Positions 4,350 to 56,025 of a DNA stretch of 64,000 bases are shown piece after piece (the stretch's first letter is position 1; each line of letters opens with the position of its first letter). This stretch comes from Scyliorhinus canicula (lineage: Eukaryota): positions 434,001-498,000 of the forward strand of contig NW_024055870.1 in the NCBI RefSeq assembly GCF_902713615.1, written 5' to 3'. The position numbers and the translations under genes are program-made. A model generated the notes under the pieces. The model was not told the DNA's origin. It saw only the letters and a program-made list of their open reading frames with translations, and made no database searches.

Positions 4350-4531
4350 GAAATGAAATGAAAATCGCTTATTGTCACGAGTAGGCTTCAATGAAGTTAC
4401 TGTGTAAAGCCCCTAGTCGCCACATTCCGGCGCCTGTCCGGGGAGGCTGGTACGGGAATTGAACCGTGCTGCTGGCCTGCTTGGTCTGCTTTAAAAGCCA
4501 GCGATTTAGCCTTGTGAGCTAAACCAGCCCC
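4350..4531 (-). mobile_element. Short tRNA-derived SINE with (CATTT)n tail (second SINE family)
   Basis: Minus strand reads GGGGCTGGTTTAGCTCAC...GGTTCAATTCCC...GTGACAATAAGCGATTTTCATTTCATTTC; related copies at 8746, 17329 and 45885. Confidence 0.8.
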
Positions 4532-27074: not shown

Positions 27075-28006
27075 TTAGCGTTCCATTTCCGAGCAAGTAT
27101 CATTACCCCCACGCATCAGTGACTTCTGAATCAGAGAAAAGGGATATTTTATCACATTGAACAGCAGATTTCTGAACTTTCTCTGGGTTATTGTGTAAAT
27201 CGCTGTGTTGGTGCATGAACTCAGTAGCTGCAGCATAATCCCAACCTCTTGAAAAATTGGAAAGGTGGTAAATGCGATTCTGCGTCTGAAGGCACCTGTC
27301 AGGTTACAATATATGAAATATGTCACTGTTGTTATCCAGAGAAGGACAAAACAACTGGATATTGTAAATAATAACATAATGGATCTTCTGCGGTTCATCA
27401 GCTCAGAATCTTTTTCATTCCCCTCTTGTCTGTGCTTCCGGAGGCTAATTCGGCCACGATTGGCTATCAGAATACGTTTGACGGTGAAAATATTACAGAA
27501 CAAAATCAGAAAGAATGGAAGAACTGGGGTTAACAGCTGCTGAATCCACGAAAATGCGATCCAAATGGGTAGAAAAAAATAATAAGCTACCAGCTCGCAT
27601 CCCAACATAACGTCGATGTAATCACTGGAATACAGGAAGGGCCAGGGAATGTTCTTTATACAGAAGAATGAGCTCACAATGGTGATGACAACAACAGCAG
27701 TTTTCTCGGTGCAGTATTTTGTTTTCAGCTTCTGACAGCAAATGGCCACCAGGCGATTGAAGGTCAAAGACACCGTCAACCAAACAGAAATGTCGATTGC
27801 GGCGTGAGACATGAACAGAATAAATCTGCACACGGGAGTGTAGAGCAGGAAAGTGTAATTCCAAAACATTGTCGCAATACGATGTAAGATGACATTAAAT
27901 GCAATAACCATCAGATCCGCTGTCGCCATGGCCACCAGATAACGGGTGATGCATTTGGAGAGGCCACAATTTTTGAAGGACAGGATTGCGATTGTCACTA
28001 TATTTA
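27075..28006 (-). CDS. GPR139/GPR142-like class A GPCR, coding exon 2 (end of TM1 to C-terminus)
   Basis: Acceptor ctttctacttctcacag|TA AAT ATA; VNIVTIAILS..CGLSKCITRYLVAMATADL, WLTVSLTFNRLVAIC, SSCTNTAIY; open to the stop codon. Confidence 0.9.
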
Positions 28007-28539
28007 CTGTGAGAAGTAGAAAGAAAGCAGTTAGGTAAAGGAAACTGTAAATGTAAATGGAAATGCCGAAGGAACAGTATAATCTCTGAACAAAACCAAA
28101 TGCAGAGGATCTGCTGGAATCTTTTGAATGGTAAGATACAAAAATGCATATCCGCGTCCTCCCACATTCATCTTCTGACGATACAATGCATGGTGTTGGC
28201 CTACATTGTGCAATAAACATCAATAATACATAGCAACAGTAAGAGGCCCTTTGACCCAATAAGCCTGTACCGATCAGTGTCCTAACCAGACCAAACGCCT
28301 ATACCCTTCATATATCACGTTTTTTATCGTTTCTATCGACAGAGGTTTTACAGGCCCCTAACATATATGCCTCAACCACCTCACGTGGCAGTCCATTCCA
28401 GGCCACCACCACTCTGTGGAAAGTAACGTACCCGCACAACTGCAATGACGTTCTCCCCCACAACCTTGAACTTGTTCTTCTTGTAATTGACATTAAGACC
28501 CTTTGGAAAAGCCTTTACCTGTATATAGATATAGTATAT

Positions 28540-36279: not shown

Positions 36280-37708
36280 GAGGTGCCAAGGGGTGCCAAA
36301 TGCGTTTCCGCGACTAATGGTGCGAAATGGGATATACAGACAGCGACGGGCAGCGGGACTGTGTAACACATCCTCCAGATTATGTCAGACGAGGCACAGC
36401 ATGGTTATGGGGAAGGACACAATTACCTGGTGAGTGTCAAGCTGTAGGTGGCACTGAACGTTAATGCCACTGGTTTATTCCAGCTGCTGAATGGGGAGCT
36501 ATCCGGGACCACGCAGCCGTCGGCGGACAGGTGCACCCGCGCCATGATGGACGCCCTATATGCCCAGGCGGAGCAGTATATCCTGTTCCATGTTGACCGA
36601 GCCCCCCCAGATGCCCGGGCAGCGGGGTTCGCTGCCAGCTCTGGATGCCCCGTGTTCAGAGGGTGATCGACTGGATGCCTGTAAGCCGACAGGCACCTGT
36701 GAATAGCAGGCCACTGTACATTACCAGAAAGGTGTGGCACACCATGAACCTCCAGCTGATGGGCGACCAACAGATGCGCATCAAGCACGTGTGCGTTCGA
36801 TACTTGGGCAGTATCCATGACTCATTCATGGTGGCACACTGGATGATTCCCGACATGTTCGAGGGACACTCACCCCTCCCCCTCTGGCTGCACGGTTGGC
36901 TGCTGGGCGACAGGGGTAACACTCGGCCACTATGACGGATGACGGCGAGCCGGAGTCCACAGACTGCCGCAGAGACCCGATACAATATCGCAACATCGCT
37001 ACCAACCAGTGCCCTGTTCTCGGACACGGTAAGGACACGGAGGTCTGTTGGTATCCCTCAGGGCGTCTTCAGCTCCCGTGGGTTTGCACCGCCTTGCCCT
37101 GGTTGGGTGGTAGGGTATTTGTGTCCGAGACCAAATACAAACACGACACTGTTAGACATTCCAGTGCATGTAGCCCAGGGTTTGGGTCGATGATGTAATC
37201 AGTGACCAGGGCAGCCGATCATTGTGGCTGTCCTGGGTGCTGGCATGTGGAGCAGGGTGGTTGTCTGGCCGTCTCCCGGTGGGGAGGGGGTTCCGGGTTA
37301 CATGTGTGTGGGTGGTAGGGGGGTTGTTGCCAGGGGCACAGCTCTGCCTACTCACCCTGGCCGCCGTAAGGAAGTTGTGCAGTCGGGGCGATTTCCTCAA
37401 TGGCCCAGTGTGGCGTACAGCGGTGCTTGACAACCTTCCTCGTTGGCCGGAGTACCATGCACCTCTCCTTCAGGGCATCGAGGAGGGTCTCTAGATCTGT
37501 GTCTCCGAACCATCCAGCTGAGAGTAAATCACGTACCCGGCGAATCCGGCGACGTTTGGCTTGCAACGTCGCGTTTCACGATGCGATGGTGCTCGAACCT
37601 TTGCAGTTGGTGAATGGGTGCACCTGTCGCACCGTTTGTACCGTCGTCAAAGTCCACAGTTTTCACGACGGCTTCAGCACTTAGTTTCAAAATTGGAGAA
37701 TCCAGCCC
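36280..37708 (+). mobile_element. Degenerate PIF/Harbinger DNA transposon (HARBI1-like transposase on plus, Myb/SANT-like ORF on minus)
   Basis: VALNVNATGLFQ, GFAASSGMPRVQRVID, HTMNLQ, YLGSIHDS, WLLGDRG; convergent WFGDTDLETLLDAL; terminal GGAGAATCCAGCCC at ~37695-37708. Confidence 0.8.
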
Positions 37709-39286: not shown

Positions 39287-39354
39287 AAACTGCTTGATCT
39301 GAAAAAAGGAGCGACTATTTAAATAGTCGCTCCTTTTTTCAGATCAAGCAGTTT
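39287..39354. repeat. Perfect 68-bp palindrome
   Basis: 34-bp arms with no spacer, centre ATTT|AAAT at 39320/39321. Confidence 0.95.
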
Positions 39355-41770: not shown

Positions 41771-41953
41771 AGTCAGTTATTGTACAGAGCTGGAATCAAA
41801 CTTAGATTACCGCAGTGTGAGATCAGAAAGAAAACACGTGGCACAAGCCTATTTGTAAAACAGATTAATGCAACCTCAAAACAAAATGCACTCATTTCTA
41901 ATTATAAATGTGCTGAGCTTTTATTTATGCAACACACATTTTTCGGAAACAAC

Positions 41954-42041
41954 AAAAATGCCAGACAGCGCCCACGGTGAGGCAGGTTCGAACGTACAAT
42001 TAAGTTGATGCTGTAAAGTAACCAGTGAGCTAAAGCTGACG
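41954..42041 (-). ncRNA. Vault RNA-like gene, copy 1
   Basis: CGTCAGCTTTAGCTCACTGGTTACTTTACAGC...GTTCGAACC...GGGCGCTGTCTGGCATTTTT: vault-type A box with GGTTACTT, B box, GGGCGCT motif, terminal stem, poly-T terminator. Confidence 0.8.
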
Positions 42042-44309
42042 AAGCTTCAAGCATGGACACGTTGTATATCAAGGATAACCGTGTTCAAACAGGGCGTGTT
42101 GGGGAATATTAAAAGGAAACTCCAGCAGTTGGTGCACATCATCTCACCTCCAGACGTGAGAAAAATCTTAAAAGTTCGTGAATTACAGACGGAGGACATT
42201 CATTCCGTTTAATCTCAGCGGCTCTTTAGATTAGCAGATCATTAAATACCACTCGACCGACCTGCATGCATTTGATTGCTGTCGTATCTCGCATTGACGT
42301 TTGGAAGCCACTGTTCTATCTGCCTCCACCAATCTCACAGGCAGTGCAGACCAGATAATTGAACTGTATTGCAGAACATTGAAATAATTGTTGGAAAGAT
42401 GTAACTTAAAAATATTACTCGCAGCTATATTCGTCTGCGAGCACTGTTGCAACTGGAACTGATAGCAAATGACAACATAGGGAGACGACAAGGCCACTCA
42501 CTCCTGCCCCAACATCCAGTTTAATCAGAGCTGAGCTTCTGCCTAAATGTCATTTCCTGCTGTTCCTCAGATCATTTTAATCCCTCAAGGACCAGTGTCC
42601 ATGAGAATGGCAGAGGCAGACATCCAAAATAAAATATCAAAATCACTTGGACATTGAGTTGTATTGCTCGAATCGGCAGCGTTATGGAGCTGGAAGCTAG
42701 GATAGGCTCACAGAGCCACAGAGGTTGACAGCATGGAAACAGGCCCTTCGGCCCAGCTTGTCCATGCCTCCCAATGTTTACCCCGAGTCTTGTCTCAATT
42801 GCAAACATTTGGCTAACATCACTCCATTACTTTTTTTCCGCATGGAACTCTCTGGACCCTTTTCTGTGTCTCCCGTCTTACCTTAAACATGTGCATGAAT
42901 GTTGCAGCCTCCACTACCTTCGGGAATATATGTTGCCGATGTACCTTATCTCTGTCTAAATAATCTTGGATAAATTCACCCCTCTGCCACCCACATTCCA
43001 GTGGAATATGTCCAAGCCTAACAAACCCACCCTATATCTCAAACTATCAATTTCCGGTAGCATCCTGAAAAAAGGTTCTGCACTCTTTCTGTTTAATAAC
43101 GTCATCTCTATAATAGTGAGACCCGAACTTTACGCATCATTCCGAGTGTAGCCTTATTATTGTCTTATAGAACTTGAACAAGACGCCCAAACTCCGATAT
43201 TTAATGTTCTGACAACGTGTCTGTAGAACAGTAATGACGGGGACAGACACAGCAAATATCCACTTCAGTGCTGTGAAGTGCCAATTATTCATCATGTTTG
43301 CTATGGTTCCAAACGGCAAAAAGTCGCAAAATATGTCTGACTGAAAAGGAAATCCCGAAGAATATGCTTCTGAGGTTAAAGACAGCAACTGAAAGGTTTA
43401 CCCGAAACCAAGAGGAACAAAACAGAACAAAGGAGAGTGTTAAATAGAGAAGGGGGGGAGAGAATTTTAAATCCAGGTTAGATTGCACACTACTCCGTTC
43501 CACCTTACTGTTACATCCACATTGATTCTGTGTTCCAGCATACATGTTGATCGATACAGGTTCCGATGAAGCCCAGGTTATAAGATGGACTCCACCGTTA
43601 TAATGGAAATCAGTTTATCCCATGTCCCAGAAATGCAAAGCAGCAATGCTATACAAATATCACTTTTACGTGATTTGCGAGTTTATTGTCAGGGCAGCAG
43701 TTAATACCCATCCCGAATTGCCTTTCAGAAGGTATTGGTGAGCTGCCTAGTGGATCCGCCGCTGCCCGAGCTGTGGGTACACCCAGCGTGCTTTTAGGTA
43801 TTTCTTGTCCTTCAAAATGATAGTGGTCGTAGGTCTGGGAGGTGCTGTCTGAGTTATTGCGGTGCATTTTGGGCTGGTTGTGGCGGAGGGATTGAATTCT
43901 TGTGACCGGAGGAGCAGTCAAACGTACTCCTTGTTCCTGGATCCTTTCGAACCCGCTGAGTGTTGTTGGACATCTGGGGAACAGCGTTTCACGTGGAAAA
44001 TAATGGATTAACCAATTTGCCTGCGGAAAAAATCTTGTTCCGACATTTAAAAAAATATATAATAGATAATCGTTAATGCTCTTTTCCTCCATTTAGGTTG
44101 TGAGTAATTGCCAATGTGTGACAGGTCAGTTATTGCACAGAGCTGGAATCGAACTCGGGGTTCCGCAATGTGAGATCAGAAAGTAAACTATTGACATAAG
44201 CCTATTTTTAAAAAAAGAATAATACACCTTCTGAACACAATCCACATACTTCTTATTCTAAATGTGCTGCTGCTTTTATTTATGCAAGGCGAATATTTTG
44301 GAAAAAAAT

Positions 44310-44399
44310 AAAAACGTCAGGCAGCGCACACGATGAGACAGGCTCGAACTTACAATTAAGTGGATGCTGCGAAGTAACCAGTGAGCTAAAGCTGACGCC
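44310..44399 (-). ncRNA. Vault RNA-like gene, copy 2
   Basis: GGCGTCAGCTTTAGCTCACTGGTTACTTCGCAGC...GTTCGAGCC...GTGCGCTGCCTGACGTTTTT; 5' CGTCAG pairs perfectly with 3' CTGACG; TATATA about 25-30 nt upstream. Confidence 0.85.
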
Positions 44400-44756
44400 G
44401 ACATCAAGCCTGGACACATTGTATATACAGGATAACCGTGATCACACTCGCCGTTATGGGTAACACAGTTTGCCGTTGACTTCAGGAAGTGTAGTGGAGA
44501 ACGTGCCCCTGGTCTACATCATTGTGACTGAAGTACAAATGGTCCACCGTAATCAAGGGCACCCAACTACAGCTCAGCTTTACCCACAAAATGTCATCAC
44601 TGAAGCTATGTAATGAGACCAAATTCTTTCTTAAAGAGAAAGTAAAGTCCACGGCCCAATCGTGTTTCTGATTATCAATCAGATCATCATTAAAGTAAAT
44701 TTCCTAAATGAACTTTTCCTCCATTTCAGTTGTGAATAATTGAAAAAAGTGTGTGA

Positions 44757-45498
44757 GAGAATCTGGTAAACTGGTGCGACGACAATAATCTCTCCCTCAA
44801 AGTCAACAAAAAAAGGAGATTCTCATCGACTTCAGGAAGCGTAGTGGGGAACATATCCCTGTCTACATCAATGGGAGTGAAGTACAAAGGTTCGAGAGCT
44901 TCAATCTTTTAGGTGTCCTTATCACCAACAACCTGTCCTGGTCCCTCAATGCCGACACTATAGTTAAGAAAACCAATGGCTGTTATTTCTCAGGAGACAA
45001 AGGACATTTGGCACATCAGCAATGACTCTCGCCAACTTTTACAGATGCACCATAGAATGCATTCTTTAAGCCTGGATCCTGGTCTCCCAAGACAGCAGGT
45101 CGTGAATATAGCCCAATCCATCAAGCAAACCGTCCTCCCATTCATTGACTATCTATAATTCCCGCTGACTCGGAAAGGCAGCCAGCATAATTAAGGACCA
45201 CAGGCAGCACGAACATACACTCGTCCACCTTCTTCCGTCAGGAAAAGATACAGAAGTTTGAGGTCAAGTTCCATACGACTCAAGAACAGCTTCTTCCCTG
45301 CTACCGTCAGACGTTTCAATGGACCTACCTCGTATTATGCTGATATTTCCTCTTCACTCCAGCCATAACTGTGGCATTATATTCTGCAGTCTCGCCTTCC
45401 TTCCCTGTGTACGGTATGCGTTCTGTGAATCGCAGCAAGAAACATTTTTTTCTCTGAAGAATAATAATGTGAGACTAATAAATCAAATCCAATCAAAT
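44757..45498 (+). mobile_element. Degenerate Rex1/Babar 3' fragment
   Basis: Similar to 1300-1860 and 4250-4715 (ATCACCAACAACCTGTCCTGG, AACAGCTTCTTCCC, CAAATCCAATC tail). Confidence 0.8.
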
Positions 45499-45683
45499 AG
45501 GTCAGTGATTGTGCAGAGCTGGAATCGAACTTGTGTTTCCGCAGTGAGAAACCAGAAAGTGAACATGTGGCACAGGCCGCATTAAAAAATAATTTCAGTG
45601 CAACCTTTAAAAAATACACCAACTTTTAATTTAAAAATCTGGGTCCTTTCCATTGGGGCAACACACTTGATTTGGAAATAGTG

Positions 45684-45771
45684 AAAACGCCAGACAGCGC
45701 ACACGGTGAGACAGGTTCGAACTTGTAGTTAAGTTGATGCCGTGAAGTAACCAGTGAGCTAAAGCTGACGC
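45684..45771 (-). ncRNA. Vault RNA-like gene, copy 3
   Basis: GCGTCAGCTTTAGCTCACTGGTTACTTCACGGC...GTTCGAACC...GTGCGCTGTCTGGCGTTTT; TTTATAT upstream. Confidence 0.82.
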
Positions 45772-45884
45772 TGGCATTAAGCAGGCACACAGTGCATATA
45801 AAGTATTACCGTAATCATACTCGCCGTCGTGGGTAACATTGAGGGGAAATTCCAGTGTGTTGGTGCATGTCATCGTTCCCATAT

Positions 45885-45975
45885 CAGCGTCCTCGAACAG
45901 GCGCTGGAATGTGGCGACTAGGGACTTTTCAAGTAACTTCATTGAAGACTACCAGTGACAATAAGCGATTTTCCT
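45885..45975 (+). mobile_element. Second-family SINE 3' fragment
   Basis: GGAATGTGGCGACTAGGG...GTGACAATAAGCGATTTTC. Confidence 0.75.
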
Positions 45976-46589
45976 TTGATCACATAGGCAGACGTGATCA
46001 GAAACTTCATTCCGTTTAACCACAGCGGCTCTATAAAATGGCAGATCATTCAATTCCACTTGACTTACCTTTCCACAGAGGCAGGCATTTGATTTCTCGA
46101 TATTTCTCACATTAAAATTTGAAACCACTGTTGCATCTGTCACCGCCAATCTCACAGACAGTGCAGACCAGATATCTAAACTGTATCCAGGACATTGAAA
46201 TTATGGTTGGAAAGATGCAACATAATAATCTTATCTCGCAGTTGTATTCATCAGTGAATACTGTTGCACCTGGAACTAATAGCAAATGGCAACACAGGAA
46301 GACGACACGGCCACTCACTCCTGCCCAACATTCAGTTTGTTCACAGCTGAGGTTCTGCCTCAGTGGCATTTCCCACCTTTTTCCTCAGATCCTTTCATTC
46401 CCTCAAGGACCATTGCCCATGAGAATGACAGAGGCAGACACGAAAGTAAAATATCAAAATCACTTGGACATTGAACTGGAGTGCTCAAATGTGCAGCGTT
46501 ACAGAGCTGGAAGGTGGAAGGGTCACAGAGGCGTAGAGGTTGACAGCATGGAAACAGGCCCTTCGGCCCAACTTGTCCATTGCCTGCAT

Positions 46590-47170
46590 CAAACAGAGTC
46601 TATTAGTCAAGTGTCCCACATTAAACACTATTAGAACAGCGTCATTAATTAAACAGAGACCGTTTAAACATTGCCCTACATTAAACAGACTATTTAAACA
46701 GTGCCCTACATTAAACTGACTATTTAAACAGTGCCCTCCATTAAACAGAGCCTATTTAAACAGTGCCCCACATTAAGCAGACAGTTTAAACAGTGTCCTG
46801 CATTAAACAGAGCCTGTTTAAACAGTGTACTACATTAAACAGAGCCGATTCAAACAGTGTACTACATTAAACATTCTATTTAAACAGTGTCCATTATTAA
46901 ACCAGACCATTTAAACAGTGGCCTACATTAAACAGGGACTATTTAAACTGCCCTACATCAAACAGACTATGTAAACAGTGCCCCTCATTAGAGACTATTT
47001 AAACAGTGCCCTATATTAAACAGACTATTTAAACAGTGCCCGACATTAAACAGAGTCTACCCTACATTAAACAGAGTACTTAAACAGTGCCCTACTTTAA
47101 ACAGACTATTTAAAGAGCGCCTACATTAAACAGAGACTTTTAAAACTGTTCTGAATTCAACGGAGACTAT
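46590..47170. repeat. ~30-32-bp AT-rich minisatellite
   Basis: Unit TTAAACAG(AG)ACTATTTAAACAGTGCCCTACA. Confidence 0.9.
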
Positions 47171-48744: not shown

Positions 48745-49790
48745 ATTTTCTGTCACTACCTCTGTCCGTATCCCGCTCTCTATCTCGTTCCCGCTCTCTT
48801 GCGCTTTTTGTCTCTGTATGTCTACCTGCCACTCACTATCTTTCTCCCTCTCTCTTCCCGTTTCAGTCTCCCGCTCACTGCCTCTCTCTCTCTCTCATAG
48901 AATTTACAGTGCAGAAGGAGGCCATTCGGCCCATTGAGTCTGCACCGGCTCTTGGAAATAGGACCCTACCCAAGGACCAGACCTCCACCCTATCCCCATA
49001 ACCCAGTAACCCAACCCAAAACTAAGTGCAATTTTGGACACTAAGGGCTATTTAGCATGGCCAATCCACCAAACCTGCACATCTTTCGACTGTGGGAGGA
49101 AACCGGAGCACCCGGAGGAAACCCACGCAGACATGGGGAGAACGTGCAGACTCTGCACAGACACTGAACCAGAGACTGGATTGAACCTGGAACCTCGGCG
49201 CCATAAGGCAGCAGTGCTAACCACTGCGCCACCGTGTAGCCTTTCCTCTTTCTTTGTCTCGAGCTGTCTCTCTCTCTCTCTCTCGGTCTCTCTCTCCCTC
49301 TGACTCGCGCAGTCTCTTTGCCTCTCCCCATCTCTCGCGGTCCTTTCTGCTGGTGTTTCTTTTCTCTCTCTGTTTCTCCGCTGTCTCTCTGCGTCTCTCT
49401 CTCTCACTTTCTATTTCTCTCCTTGTCTTTCTCACTCTATTCTCTCTTTGTGCCTCTCTGTCTCTATCGCTCCTTTTGTCTCTCCCTGACAAGCTGTCTA
49501 TCTCTTTCTGCCTGCCTCTCTCTATCTCTTTCTCTGAGCGTCACTCTGTCTCACCCTCTACCTCTCTCTCTCGCTCGCTCTCTCTGTCTGTCTCTTTCTC
49601 TCTCGGTCTCTGTCTCCCCACCTGTCTCTATGTTTCTCTCTGAGTCTCTCTCTCAATCTCTTGTCTGTATCTTCCTGACTATCTCTCTTTGTTTCTCGCT
49701 CTCTATACCTTACAACTTCTCTGTCTGTCTGTATCTATCTCCCGCGTTCTCTCTCTCTTTCTCTCTGTCTCTCTGTCTCTCTCTCTCTAT
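48745..49790. repeat. CT-rich low-complexity tract interrupted by a minus-strand V-SINE (~48896-49237)
   Basis: Degenerate (CT)n/(TCTG)n; SINE with V domain. Confidence 0.85.
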
Positions 49791-50239
49791 ATATATATGC
49801 ATATATTTAGACGGAGATCTAACAACTCACCGCTGATATTCCTCTCGCCATCTTGACTAAGTGCCGGGATCGCCTGCCTGTGCGGACCCCTGTCTCCGGC
49901 CTTAATGTATCATCCCAGCGGGGGATGTGATGTTTAAGAAACGTGAAGCGACCAGCTTGAAGGTGGAGACCGAGTTGGAGACGAGAAGCGGGAGGGTGGA
50001 GAGTCGAAACTGGGTGGGAGCCCGTCACACCTCGCGCGGAATATGTTGTGGATGACGCCTGGAGAAGGAAGCCGCAGGTTGACGGTGGTGAGGCCGGAGG
50101 CGGTGCAGAGCCTCCCCACTCGGCGCGGAGTCCAGCCTATGTGTCTATTACGGTCACTAACCGCCCAAGTAGTCGGTCGGAAACTGGGCCGAAACCGCCA
50201 TGAGGCGGTGCGGAAAGATACCGTACTTCAGAACTGATC

Positions 50240-51569: not shown

Positions 51570-52700
51570 CTATTGCCTCCACGGGCGGGCGAGGAGGTTG
51601 GCTCCCTTGCGCAGGACCCCCCAGTAGGCGTCCTTGAACTGCCGGTTCATTATGGCGTAGAGGATTGGGTTGATGCAGCTATTCAGCCAGGTGAAATTGC
51701 CGGCCACCATGTGGACGAGAACGGGGGCCCGCTTCTTCCCGTCCACCACATGCAGGAAGCAGAAGGGGAAGTAGCAGGTCACGTAGACTAGGAACATGGC
51801 GAAGCACATGCGGGTCACCTTGCGAAACTCGCCGCTGCTGCTCCTCTTGGCCTGGCAGATGGAGGTCCCGGTTTCCCCGGCCTGGAGGGCCATTTCGTTG
51901 CCAGGGGCTGCGGTCTCAATGCTGGTGGCATCAGTCGACCTGGTGGGCGCATCCCCGGAGAGGGAGTTGGCGCTGGACACGTTGGCGATCCCGCTGTCCG
52001 CAGCGGAGACCCCTGCCCCCGTTGGCTTCCTCCCGCGACCATCGCCCTCCAGCCGGTACCCCTCCAGTGCCTGGGAAGCCGCCTTCACCTTACGATGGAT
52101 GAGGAAGTAGAACATCCCAATGCAGCTTAGTCCAAGTCCAAACATGAATAACATGAGGATGGTGGTGTAAGGCCTCCCTCGCTCCCTGTGGAAGGTGCAG
52201 GTGCAGACAGGCGGGAGGAAGACATAGATATTCCAAAGGGGCCCGAAGAGAGTCAGGCCCAACAGCCACGGCAGGGCTACGAAGAAGGGCATCGTGCGGC
52301 AGGAGAAGACCCGGTCGAACCTGCGGGCGTCCGAGATGAGGACGTAGCGGCTCATGGCGATGAGAATCAAGCTGAAGATGGAGACAGCGTTGGCCACAAA
52401 GAGGATAAGGCCGAAGACACGGCACATGCCCTCACCCTGGCGCCAGGCGAAGTGGATGAAGGTGTCGGTCGTCACGGGCTGGAGGAAGGCGCAGTAGATG
52501 AGGTCGGCCACTGTCAGGTTGAGGATGAGCACGTTGAGGCGGGTGCGGATCCTCTTGTCCGTGGCAAAGGCCAGCACCGTCATGACGTTGCCCACGGTCC
52601 CCACGGCAGTCACCAGGATCCCCAATAGGGCACCAAAGTAGCGGTAGTTGACGACAGCCGGGTGGCAGGTCAGGTTGCTGAAGGACGAGTTGGGATCCAT
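51570..52700 (-). CDS. GPR84: G protein-coupled receptor 84 (376 aa from MDPNSSFSNLTC)
   Basis: Matches remembered GPR84 segments: YRY..., GTVGNV, NLTVADL.YC..LQP, CRVFGL.LF, VCTC.F.R.RGRPYTTILM, long ICL3, EF.KVTRMCFA.FL, TWLN.CINP.LYA.MNRQF. The ORF extension upstream of 52700 is not GPCR-like. Confidence 0.93.
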   Translation of the reverse strand: MDPNSSFSNLTCHPAVVNYRYFGALLGILVTAVGTVGNVMTVLAFATDKRIRTRLNVLILNLTVADLIYCAFLQPVTTDTFIHFAWRQGEGMCRVFGLILFVANAVSIFSLILIAMSRYVLISDARRFDRVFSCRTMPFFVALPWLLGLTLFGPLWNIYVFLPPVCTCTFHRERGRPYTTILMLFMFGLGLSCIGMFYFLIHRKVKAASQALEGYRLEGDGRGRKPTGAGVSAADSGIANVSSANSLSGDAPTRSTDATSIETAAPGNEMALQAGETGTSICQAKRSSSGEFRKVTRMCFAMFLVYVTCYFPFCFLHVVDGKKRAPVLVHMVAGNFTWLNSCINPILYAIMNRQFKDAYWGVLRKGANLLARPWRQ

Positions 52701-52889
52701 TGAGCACCCCTTATGGGAAAGACCACAATTGAAAATCACAATCCAAAATGCCAATTGAAGACCGCAATGGACGACCACAACCGAAGAGCAAAAATGCTTC
52801 TTAAAATAGGAGACCAGCTGTGATGGCGCCTCGACCCTGCGAGTACAGTGGTTGTGACTCCTTCTCTGCCTCTGCTCGGTACTTGCTCG

Positions 52890-53045
52890 GAGCCCCTTTA
52901 TAGAGCTGCGAGAGAGGGTTCGCACAAACAGTTCCTCTGACGCCAAGTTTGTTCTCGAACTGCTTCCCTTTTCTGAACCTTCTTCTCCAAATCACCCAGA
53001 GAGGGAGAGAGACGTAATTTCCACGGCCCACAATTTGGCAATAGT
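52890..53045 (-). promoter_or_regulatory. Putative GPR84 promoter
   Basis: Minus-strand TATAAA at ~52897-52902; PU.1/ETS-like AAAAGGGAAG at ~52963-52972; NF-kB-like GGAAATTAC at ~53014-53022; C/EBP-like TTGCCAAAT at ~53033-53041. Confidence 0.45.
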
Positions 53046-53109: not shown

Positions 53110-56025
53110 ATGCCATAGAGAACAACAGACCATGTGTATAATATATCGAATAACAGCCCCTGTGTATATTGTTGAGCATAACAGTCCTTGTGTACATTCT
53201 AGAAAATAACAGCCCATGTGGATATTATAGAATTTAACAGTCCCTGCCCTGTGTATATTATAGTGAATATAAGTCCCTATTTATATTACAGAGAAAAACA
53301 GTCTATGTATATTATAGAGAATAACAGCCCCTGTGTTTATTATAGAGAATAACAGCCCCTTTGTATATTATAGAGAATAACAGTCTCTGTGTATATCATG
53401 TAGAATAACATTCCCTGTGTATATTATGGAGAACAACAGTCCCTGTGTAAATTATAGAGAATTAAATTCCCTGTGTATATTATAGAGAATAATAGTCCTG
53501 TGTATATCATAGAGAATAAGAGCCCCTGCATATATTATAGAGAATAACACTCTGTGCGTATATTGTGGAGAATAACAGCACCATGCTATGTTATAGAGAT
53601 TGACAGTCTGTGTGTATATTACAGAGAATAACAGTCTGTGTATATTATAGAGACTGACAGTCCCTCTGTATATTACAGAGAATAACGGCCCCTGTGTATG
53701 TTCTTGAGAATACCTATCCCTGTGCATATTACAGACAATAACAGGCCCTATGTATATTATAGACAATAAAAGTCCCTGTGTATATTATAGATTATGACAG
53801 TATCTGTGCATATTATAGAAAATAACAGGCCCTGGCATATTATTGACAAACACAGCCCAAGTGTATATTTAAGAGGATAACAGTCCCTGTGTATATTATA
53901 GAGAATAACAGACGCTGTGCATATTATAGAAAATAACAGTCTCTGTGTATATTATAGAGAATAACAGCAACTGTGTATATTGTAGAGACCAACAGTCCCA
54001 GTCAATAGTATAGATAATAACAGCCTCTGTGTATATTGCATAGAGTAACAGCCCCTGTGTATATTATAGAGAATAACAGTTCCTGTGTATGTTATAGGGA
54101 ATAACAGCCCCTGTGTATATTATAGAGAATAACTTCCCCTGTGTACATGATTGAGAATAACAGTCCCTGTGTATAATTTAGGGAATAACAGTGTTTGTGT
54201 GCATCATGGAGAATAACGGGCCCTGTGTATATTATAGACAATAAAAGTCCCTGTGTATATTATAGATTATAACAGTATCTGTGCATATTATTGAGAATAA
54301 CAGGCCCTGTGCATATTATTGACAAACACAGCCCAAGTGTATATTTAAGAGAATAACAGTCCCTGTGTATATTATAGAGAATAACAGACGCTGTGTATAT
54401 TGTGGAGATCAACAGTCCCGGTCAATAGTATAGATAATAACAGCCACTGTGTATATTGTAGAGAATAACAGTTCCTGTGTATGTTATAGGGAATGACAGC
54501 CCCTGAGTATATTATAGAGAATAACAGCCCCTGTGTATATTATAGAGAATAACAGTCCCTGTGCATATTATTGGCAATAACAGTCCCTGTGTATATTACA
54601 GAGAATAACTGCCCCTGTGTACATGATGGAGAATAACAGTCCCTGTGTATAATATAGTGAATAACAGTGTCTGTGTATATCATGGAGAATAACAGCCCCT
54701 GTGTATATTATGGAGAATAATAGACCCTGTGTATATTATAATAAAAGCCCCTGTGTATGTTACAGAGAATAATAGTCCTGAGTATATCATAGACAATAAC
54801 AGCCACTATATATATTACAGAGAATAACATTATGTGTGTATATTACGGAGAACAACAGCCCCTGTGTATGTTATAGAGAATACCAGTCCCTGTGCATATT
54901 GCAGACAATAACAGGCCCTGTGTATATGATAGACAATAAAAGCCCCGGTGTATATTGGAACATAGAACAGTACAGCACAGAACAGGCCCTTCGACCCTCG
55001 ATGTTGTGCCGAGCAATTATCACCCTACTCAAGTCAACGTATCCACCCTACACCAGTAACCCAACAACCCCACCCCCATTAACCTTATATTTTTTAGGAC
55101 ACTAAGGGAAATTTAGCATAGCCAATCCACCTAACCCGCACATCTTTGGACTGTGGGAGGAAACCGGAGCACCCAGAGGAAATCCACGCACACACGGGGA
55201 GGACGTGCAGACTCCGCACAGACAGTGAGCCAGCCGGGAATCGAACCTGGGACCCTGGATGTGTGAAGCATTTATGCTAACCACGATGCCACCGTGCTGT
55301 CCCTATATTATAGAGTATAAACGTATCTGTGTATATTATAGAGAATAACAGCCCCGGTGCATATTATTGACAAACACAGCCCAATTGTATATTAAAGAGA
55401 ATAACTGTCCCTGTGAATATTATAGAGAATAACAGACACTGTGTATATTATAGAAAATAACAGACCCTGTGTATATTATAGAAAATAACAGTCCCTGCGT
55501 ATATTATGGAAAATAACAGCCCCTGTGTATATTATAGAGGTCAACAGTCCCTGTCAATATTACAGATAATAACAGCCCCTGTGTATATTGCATAGAATAA
55601 CAGCCCCTGTGTATACTATAGCGAATAACAGTTCCTATGTAGGTTATAGAGAATACAAGTCCCTGTGTATAATATAGAGAATAACAGTCCCTGGGTATAT
55701 TATAGAGAATAACCGCCCCTGTGTATATTATAGAGAATAACAGTCCCTGAGTATATTATAGAGAATAACAGCCCCTGTGTATATTATAGAGAATAACAGT
55801 CCCTGTATATATTATAGAGAATAACAGTCCCTGAGTATATTATAGAGAATAACAGTCCCTGAGTATATTATAGAGAATAACAGTCCCTGTGTATATTATA
55901 GAAAATAACAGCCCCTGTGTATATTGCATAGAATAACAGCATCTGTGGATATTACGGAGAATAACAGTCCCTGCGTATAATATAGAGAATAACAGTCCCT
56001 GTGCATATTATAGACAAAAAACAGT
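53110..56025. repeat. 28-bp AT-rich satellite
   Basis: Unit TATATTATAGAGAATAACAGTCCCTGTG, about 90 copies. Confidence 0.95.
54958..55303 (-). mobile_element. HE1-like V-SINE inserted in the satellite
   Basis: Reverse complement of the 2786-3130 type. Confidence 0.9.

Follow-up and report, generated by a model that had tools for sequence, protein, structure and literature searches.

We analyzed a stretch of 64,000 nucleotides from the catshark Scyliorhinus canicula (NCBI RefSeq assembly GCF_902713615.1, contig NW_024055870.1, positions 434,001 to 498,000 of the forward strand; referred to below as the window, with coordinates counted from its first letter) and found in it three vault RNA (vtRNA) elements, arranged in tandem on the minus strand downstream of a G-protein-coupled receptor (GPCR) gene resembling GPR84. 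They occupy positions 41954-42042 (copy A), 44310-44398 (copy B) and 45683-45771 (copy C). The elements belong to the vtRNA family, have the anatomy of genes, were duplicated at the DNA level and were amplified together with the GPR84-like gene. We read them, with a probability of roughly 60%, as three paralogous vtRNA genes with hybrid promoters for RNA polymerase III (Pol III), of which copy B and probably copy C would be competent, while copy A and several sister copies elsewhere in the genome would be decaying. Transcription, vault association and any cellular role of the catshark vtRNAs are what we infer from these observations.

The assignment to the family was made by covariance model. 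When the whole window was scanned with Rfam cmscan, the Vault RNA model (RF00006; gathering score 34 bits) matched copy B with 48.0 bits, copy C with 46.2 bits and copy A with 40.3 bits (E = 1e-7 to 2e-5), and these were the only three matches in the window above the gathering score. Each copy matched the full model, from position 1 to position 99, and a scan of positions 30000-64000 at a permissive E-value returned no rival family at any of the three. A preliminary description of this DNA had recognized the copies as vtRNA-like, and the model, which that description had put forward as a check, has now supported the assignment for all three. The invariant 5' block that it pointed out is 26 nt long and occurs exactly three times on the minus strand (42016-42041, 44372-44397 and 45745-45770); no other match was found in the window even with 3 mismatches, and the expectation in shuffled sequence was 0. 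Box A (TAGCTCACTGG, +11 to +21) lies within this block and is invariant in the three copies. Box B, GTTCGA(A/G)CC, follows at +50 to +58 and reads GTTCGAACC in copies A and C and GTTCGAGCC in copy B; the two boxes, which we take to correspond to the consensus Pol III boxes, are separated by about 28 nt. The region that distinguishes the three types is located between them, at +28 to +47. Near the 3' end there is a G(G/T)GCGCT motif (GGGCGCT in A, GTGCGCT in B and C), and directly after the 3' stem, at about +85, a T-run terminator of five T residues in A and B and four in C (TTTTC); in copy B, a T7 run comes after the T5 terminator. Copy A is more degenerate than the other two and starts with T and not G, and copy B is the best kept in the window. 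Box B, the 3' motif and the T4-5 terminator were all present where they had been reported.

The predicted length of the RNAs was 85-89 nt. The short variable region emphasized earlier does exist in these copies of about 89 nt, but it does not set them apart, for the known size range of vtRNAs is 84-141 nt (PMC8287541) or 88-150 nt (PMC10491885). An RNA of about 89 nt is of ordinary vtRNA size: human vtRNAs start from 88 nt and those of the bullfrog measure 89 and 94 nt (PMC10491885).

The two ends of the RNA are also complementary, as the first reading of the sequence had proposed, and folding of the three copies confirmed a panhandle. The closing stem comprises 7 bp in copies B and C, which share one predicted structure, with a minimum free energy (MFE) of -24.1 kcal/mol in B and -25.6 kcal/mol in C (z = -2.6). 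RNAalifold and the MFE structures were concordant on the panhandle. In an alignment of 12 copies, which includes those from the sister loci introduced below, 92% of the cells were paired, compared with 25-38% when the pairing partners were slid. The panhandle is intact in copy C, and copy A has two mismatches (C2/A84 and A17/G71).

Judged from the sequence, the homology of copies A, B and C to vtRNA is secure. The alternative would be some other family of small Pol III RNAs whose resemblance to vtRNA is limited to the shared A and B boxes, and it has been argued for VTRNA2-1 that much of the similarity among divergent vtRNAs is due to these boxes (PMC13404743). In the catshark, however, the agreement reaches beyond the boxes to the 5' GCUUUAGCUCA context, the 3' GCGCUGUC motif and the panhandle, and the full-length model scored above its curated threshold in ten of twelve copies, so that another family of origin appears very unlikely.

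The upstream regions of copies B and C each contain a sequence resembling a proximal sequence element (PSE), GTTACCCAnnACGGCGAGT, at -66 to -48 and a TATA box at -29. In the promoter of copy B (44421-44464, minus strand), the PSE-like GTTACCCATAACGGCGAGT covers 44446-44464 and TATATAC covers 44421-44427 (-29 to -23). In that of copy C (45794-45837, minus strand), GTTACCCACGACGGCGAGT is found at 45819-45837 and TATATGC at 45794-45800. Both elements are degenerate in copy A, whose upstream region (42064-42107, minus strand) has ATTCCCCAACACGCCCTGT at the PSE position and a TATA-like GATATAC. The distances of the TATA and PSE-like elements in B and C are those of type-3 Pol III promoters. The human genes hvg1-3 likewise combine internal A and B boxes with an external TATA box and PSE, and in addition possess a distal sequence element (DSE; PMC10491885), whereas no exact octamer or DSE site was found within 320 nt upstream of the catshark copies. 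Under our reading, the upstream PSE-like and TATA elements would work together with the internal boxes A and B as a hybrid promoter, Pol III transcription would end at the T-run and release an 85-89-nt panhandle RNA, and this RNA, like other vtRNAs, is predicted to be bound by TEP1 in vault particles or to be free in the cytoplasm.

Self-BLAST showed that each vtRNA is part of a larger duplicated unit of about 340-375 bp, located on the minus strand at 41772-42143 (unit A), 44123-44465 (unit B) and 45499-45874 (unit C). The units, composed of promoter, vtRNA, spacer and a downstream block, were 74-80% identical overall, unit A sharing 80% identity with B and 75% with C. Their homology extends over -65 to -1 (68-78% identity) and over 200 nt downstream. 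Thus, 65-110 nt of nontranscribed upstream DNA, including TATA and PSE, were duplicated together with the vtRNA. Farther upstream of unit A, about 570 bp (42199-42769) pair at 82% identity with the corresponding flank of unit C (46006-46585), both on the minus strand; the flank of unit A is in part a dispersed repeat, with a depth of about 1,000 over 42708-42851.

This arrangement bears directly on the possibility that the copies are not genes but dispersed heads of short interspersed elements (SINEs) or copies that a Pol III RNA left by retroposition. SINEs derived from tRNAs are abundant in shark genomes, the A and B boxes of the copies are tRNA-like, a B-box-like block follows each of them, and a true SINE fragment of very high copy number lies antisense just upstream of unit C (about 45876-45980; word depth 18,000-43,000 in three runs). 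The preliminary description had itself named a high-copy SINE head as the outcome that would overturn its proposal. In four public runs, however, the contig depth over the vtRNA copies was 5-65, as in the unique flanks, and 1,000-43,000 over true repeats, and contigs passed through the copies into unique DNA. No A-rich tail and no tail of the kind left by long interspersed elements (LINEs) was seen at the vtRNA units, and nhmmer searches of about 320 kb of sampled shark DNA found copies only inside the GPR84-linked units. The flank-like depth, the co-duplicated promoter and the lack of a tail exclude the head of a high-copy retroposon, and we consider retroposition of any sort extremely improbable.

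The downstream block is 59 nt long, starts about 130 nt past each vtRNA terminator and contains a B-box-like GTTCGATTCC motif. It was found on the minus strand at 41772-41830 in unit A, 44125-44183 in unit B and 45501-45559 in unit C, and in the sampled shark DNA it was seen only inside vtRNA units. With 83-86% identity among the units, it is about as conserved as the RNA body. A SINE origin of this block was also considered but gained no support: it aligned poorly to a SINE-like site at 36626 and was seen in vtRNA units only. It may serve as an additional binding site for TFIIIC or have some other regulatory role.

The cluster is not unique in the genome. We compared paralogous GPR84-like genes with 10-kb flanks and found that the whole segment, GPR84-like gene plus vtRNAs, recurs at no fewer than four further S. 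canicula loci (L003, L009, L010 and L011). The closest, L009, was 99.1% identical to the window (99.5% excluding minisatellites) over 12.4 kb. At L003 the identity was 92% in the GPR84-like part and about 96% in the cluster (7.4 kb and 5.0 kb aligned), at L010 the respective values were 91% and about 96% (7.5 kb and 5.0 kb), and at L011 the identity was 92-93% (6.2 kb and 4.3 kb). These loci contributed seven more Vault matches of 36.1-53.3 bits (three at L009, two at L010, one each at L003 and L011), copy B of L010 having the highest Vault score of all (53.3 bits), and nhmmer added two sub-threshold copies. Altogether, at least 12 vtRNA copies are present at five loci on at least four scaffolds, and each is located 6-10 kb downstream of a GPR84-like gene, with which it shares the strand. 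The family expansion suggested earlier is therefore real and larger than had been noted, but part of it is degenerate. The GPR84-like segments are a young segmental-duplication family with at least 12 kb per copy, in which L009 could be either an allelic haplotig of the window segment or a copy of it made very recently. S. canicula has at least seven GPR84-like genes with at least 90% identity, distributed over at least five unplaced scaffolds.

The differences diagnostic of types A, B and C were stable across the loci. This indicates that the triplication is older than the segmental copies; it also speaks against recent gene conversion between the types, and the simpler account is purifying selection in the past. 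Tandem triplication of an ancestral unit of about 375 bp, which held promoter, gene, spacer and downstream block, would thus have come first, long ago; more recently, a segment of at least 12 kb containing the GPR84-like gene and all three vtRNA genes would have been copied five times or more within the genome.

Outside this subfamily the association was not observed. No Vault match at E <= 1 was found within 10 kb of GPR84 or GPR84-like genes in Scyliorhinus torazame (two loci), Heterodontus francisci, Carcharodon carcharias or Callorhinchus milii. Among the more distant or partial GPR84-like paralogues of S. canicula, L012 had no Vault match at E <= 1, and L005 and L006 had none by cmscan at the gathering threshold or by nhmmer. 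For S. torazame absence is not proven, because the homology of one locus (L001) to the window stops before the expected position of the cluster. From these results, the linkage looks restricted to a young catshark subfamily. At the Callorhinchus locus (L008, MU249857.1), GPR84-like genes form a tandem array of at least four, repeating about every 2.7 kb, and a fifth GPCR gene, more divergent than these, comes after them; a partial match to the tRNA model, probably a SINE or tRNA-like element, occurs in each of the first four spacers.

We then compared how the parts of the unit have changed over the two time scales. Among the three copies in the window, the RNA bodies were 86-88% identical, the proximal promoters 68-78% and the downstream spacers 56-77%. 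The difference between body and spacer was significant for the pairs B-C (Fisher p = 4e-7) and A-C (p = 7e-5), and p was 0.07 for A-B. The recent duplicates, aligned at five loci over 3.7 kb, gave a different picture. Variable columns made up 12.1% of the RNA bodies (20/165; Fisher p = 0.010, or 0.014 without CpG sites), compared with 6.5% of the rest of the alignment (210/3224), 6.3% of the promoters (10/160; p = 1.0) and 1.7% of the downstream block (2/118; p = 0.03), which was the slowest part. The RNA bodies, and not the promoters, therefore vary about twofold faster than the flanks. Consequently, the claim that the RNA core is more conserved than the surrounding duplicated DNA stood for the three copies in the window but not for the recent duplicates, whose cores vary more. 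Private changes were concentrated in the RNA bodies at three of the five loci; counted in 165 nt of RNA body and 3,502 nt elsewhere, they numbered 3 and 2 at L009 (p = 8e-4), 10 and 86 at L011 (p = 0.01), 4 and 27 at L003 (p = 0.05), 0 and 28 at L010 (p = 0.6) and 0 and 7 in the window (p = 1).

The excess in the RNA bodies is possibly a local excess of mutation, and chance or gene conversion from unsampled paralogues is possible as well. Analyzed as mutation, it would fit Pol III activity in the germline. Transcription-associated mutagenesis is known from tRNA genes (Thornlow et al. 2018, PMC6130373), where the body transcribed by Pol III likewise has more substitutions than the DNA close by, although the catshark excess rests on only 20 variable columns. 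If it is real, a second class of Pol III genes, besides the tRNA genes, would be subject to this type of mutagenesis. To our knowledge, no such excess has been described for vtRNA genes.

Several of these observations weigh against functional genes, and they lend support to the main competing explanation, namely that all copies are nonfunctional relics, that is, vtRNA-derived pseudogenes carried along in the GPR84-like duplication, with a working gene elsewhere, for example, next to the protocadherin cluster. First of all, the RNA bodies of the recent duplicates gave no sign of purifying selection, being more variable than their flanks. In addition, several copies are damaged. In the window, copy A combines a degenerate PSE with stem mismatches, and its folding z of -0.75 was no better than that of shuffled sequence. 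At the sister loci, copy C of L003 has two changes in box A, copy B of L003 has lost 3 nt from the 3' stem and has a C-to-T change in box B, copy C of L010 has a broken T-run terminator and copy C of L011 has eight changes. Compensatory base-pair changes numbered 0 among the 12 copies, which are too closely related for this to be informative. The public runs gave no sign of a discrete transcript either. In Logan contigs from runs guessed to be RNA, genes and flanks were covered evenly, as in DNA, and because k-mers are common to the near-identical paralogous loci, contig depth is no measure of expression here; an oligo-dT run had no reads on the vtRNA genes, although poly(A) libraries are not expected to catch such RNA. 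The absence of Vault matches near GPR84 in the four other species points in the same direction, as does the protocadherin linkage reported for vtRNA genes across gnathostomes, and a canonical protocadherin-linked vtRNA gene elsewhere in the genome may carry the function.

Nevertheless, relics would not be expected to show the pattern seen in the window, where spacers fell to 56-77% identity while the cores stayed at 86-88% and the 26-nt block around box A stayed invariant, and where B and C kept PSE and TATA at exact distances. The copies in the window and at L010 had no private changes in their RNA bodies, and copy B of L010 exceeded every other copy in its Vault score. Moreover, if the DNA were silent, it would be difficult to account for an excess of mutations that is restricted to the transcribed body. 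We therefore regard the relic explanation as possible but rather unlikely, and favor the reading of three vtRNA genes, among which B and probably C would remain competent.

The genomic setting of the cluster is unusual for vtRNAs. The GPR84-like gene (51570-52700, minus strand) is a single exon encoding 376 aa plus the stop codon. The open reading frame (ORF) containing it (51570-52946, minus strand) matched human GPR84 structures in the PDB with E = 1e-103, and its 376-aa product (51573-52700) is identical to an NCBI entry and 97% identical to an S. canicula GPR84-like protein; the other six members of its 90%-identity cluster are all S. canicula proteins named "GPR84-like." Downstream of the stop codon of this gene, and on the same strand, the distance to the start of the vtRNA is 5.8 kb for copy C, 7.2 kb for copy B and 9.5 kb for copy A. 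On the other side of the cluster, a GPR139-like GPCR was identified at 27075-28259 (minus strand), and among the other eight ORFs scanned, four were of the LINE reverse transcriptase/endonuclease type and four had no Pfam match. The location between GPCR genes that had been described thus holds for a GPR84-like and a GPR139-like gene, but the neighbor belongs to a recently amplified GPR84-like family and need not be the one orthologue of GPR84. The 64 kb contained neither coding sequence of a protocadherin or of ZMAT2 nor a long cadherin ORF, which bears out the view of a noncanonical locus as far as the window reaches. ZMAT2/protocadherin linkage is typical of the vtRNA family but does not define the RNA.

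Other features of the window were recorded as well. A 28-bp minisatellite of about 50 copies (53115-54499) directly adjoins the GPR84-like gene upstream. Arrays 75-81% similar to it are found upstream of GPR84 or GPR84-like genes in the S. canicula paralogues, S. torazame, Heterodontus (L004) and Carcharodon (L007), and no such array is present upstream of the GPR84-like genes of Callorhinchus. Between the GPR84-like gene and copy C lies a 30-bp minisatellite of about 13 copies (46648-47139), whose length differs among the paralogous loci and which is much expanded in L012, and between the same gene and the vtRNA cluster there is a long CT-rich low-complexity tract (48760-49800). A perfect palindrome of 34 + 34 nt without spacer (39287-39354) had sub-threshold matches to miRNA families on both strands (mir-3156 with 47.9 bits, where the gathering score is 76). 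ARAGORN predicted a 90-nt tRNA-Phe(AAA) at 4441-4530 (minus strand), which Rfam did not report at the gathering score and which is probably a tRNA-derived repeat.

Among known systems, the catshark cluster most readily compares with human VTRNA1-1, VTRNA1-2 and VTRNA1-3 (5q31.3, between ZMAT2 and the PCDH cluster). Both are tandem three-gene Pol III clusters with internal A and B boxes and an external TATA box and PSE (PMC10491885), and the RNAs of both, predicted in the case of the catshark, measure 88-98 nt, fold into a panhandle and end at a T-run. They differ in that the catshark cluster is located downstream of a GPR84-like GPCR gene and not beside ZMAT2 or protocadherins, that the spacing from box A to box B is about 28 nt compared with 31-44 nt in the human genes, and that each catshark unit has a conserved B-box-like block downstream. 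The bullfrog vtRNAs (PMC10491885) fall into the same short size class, but they were isolated from vault particles, whereas the catshark RNAs are predicted. Secondary or decayed vtRNA loci are represented in human by VTRNA2-1 (nc886), VTRNA2-2P and VTRNA3-1P (PMC8287541, PMC10491885), of which VTRNA2-1 lacks the external TATA and PSE that copies B and C retain.

The wider distribution of the family offers a further comparison. In gnathostomes, vtRNA genes are reportedly linked to protocadherins throughout, and lineage-specific vtRNA clusters, including some teleost loci away from protocadherins, are also said to occur. The teleost paralogues are similar to the catshark genes in being a lineage-specific expansion away from the protocadherin locus; the catshark cluster differs in being embedded in a GPCR segmental duplication, with at least five loci. 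The literature that could be searched yielded no chondrichthyan case of this kind and no paper that connects Scyliorhinus with vault RNA. The catshark elements are new members of the known vtRNA family at a noncanonical, amplified locus. It would go much further to suppose all at once that the GPR84-linked cluster is the main or only vtRNA locus of the catshark, that the protocadherin linkage of jawed vertebrates was broken here, that the approximately twofold excess in the RNA bodies is transcription-associated hypermutation and that the downstream block is a possible extra TFIIIC site; we consider this combination doubtful.

These findings leave the understanding of what vtRNAs are unchanged. 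They add two small unexplained signals, the fast-evolving RNA bodies and the slow-evolving downstream block. The copies also form a natural series of promoter and body variants that can be used for asking which elements Pol III needs. In the catshark, a vtRNA cluster is found off the protocadherin locus, hitch-hiking on the segmental duplication of a GPCR gene. Considering that vtRNAs are poorly conserved and hard to trace, the at least 12 copies from a chondrichthyan, intact ones as well as decayed ones, provide the family with a reference from an early-branching lineage of jawed vertebrates.

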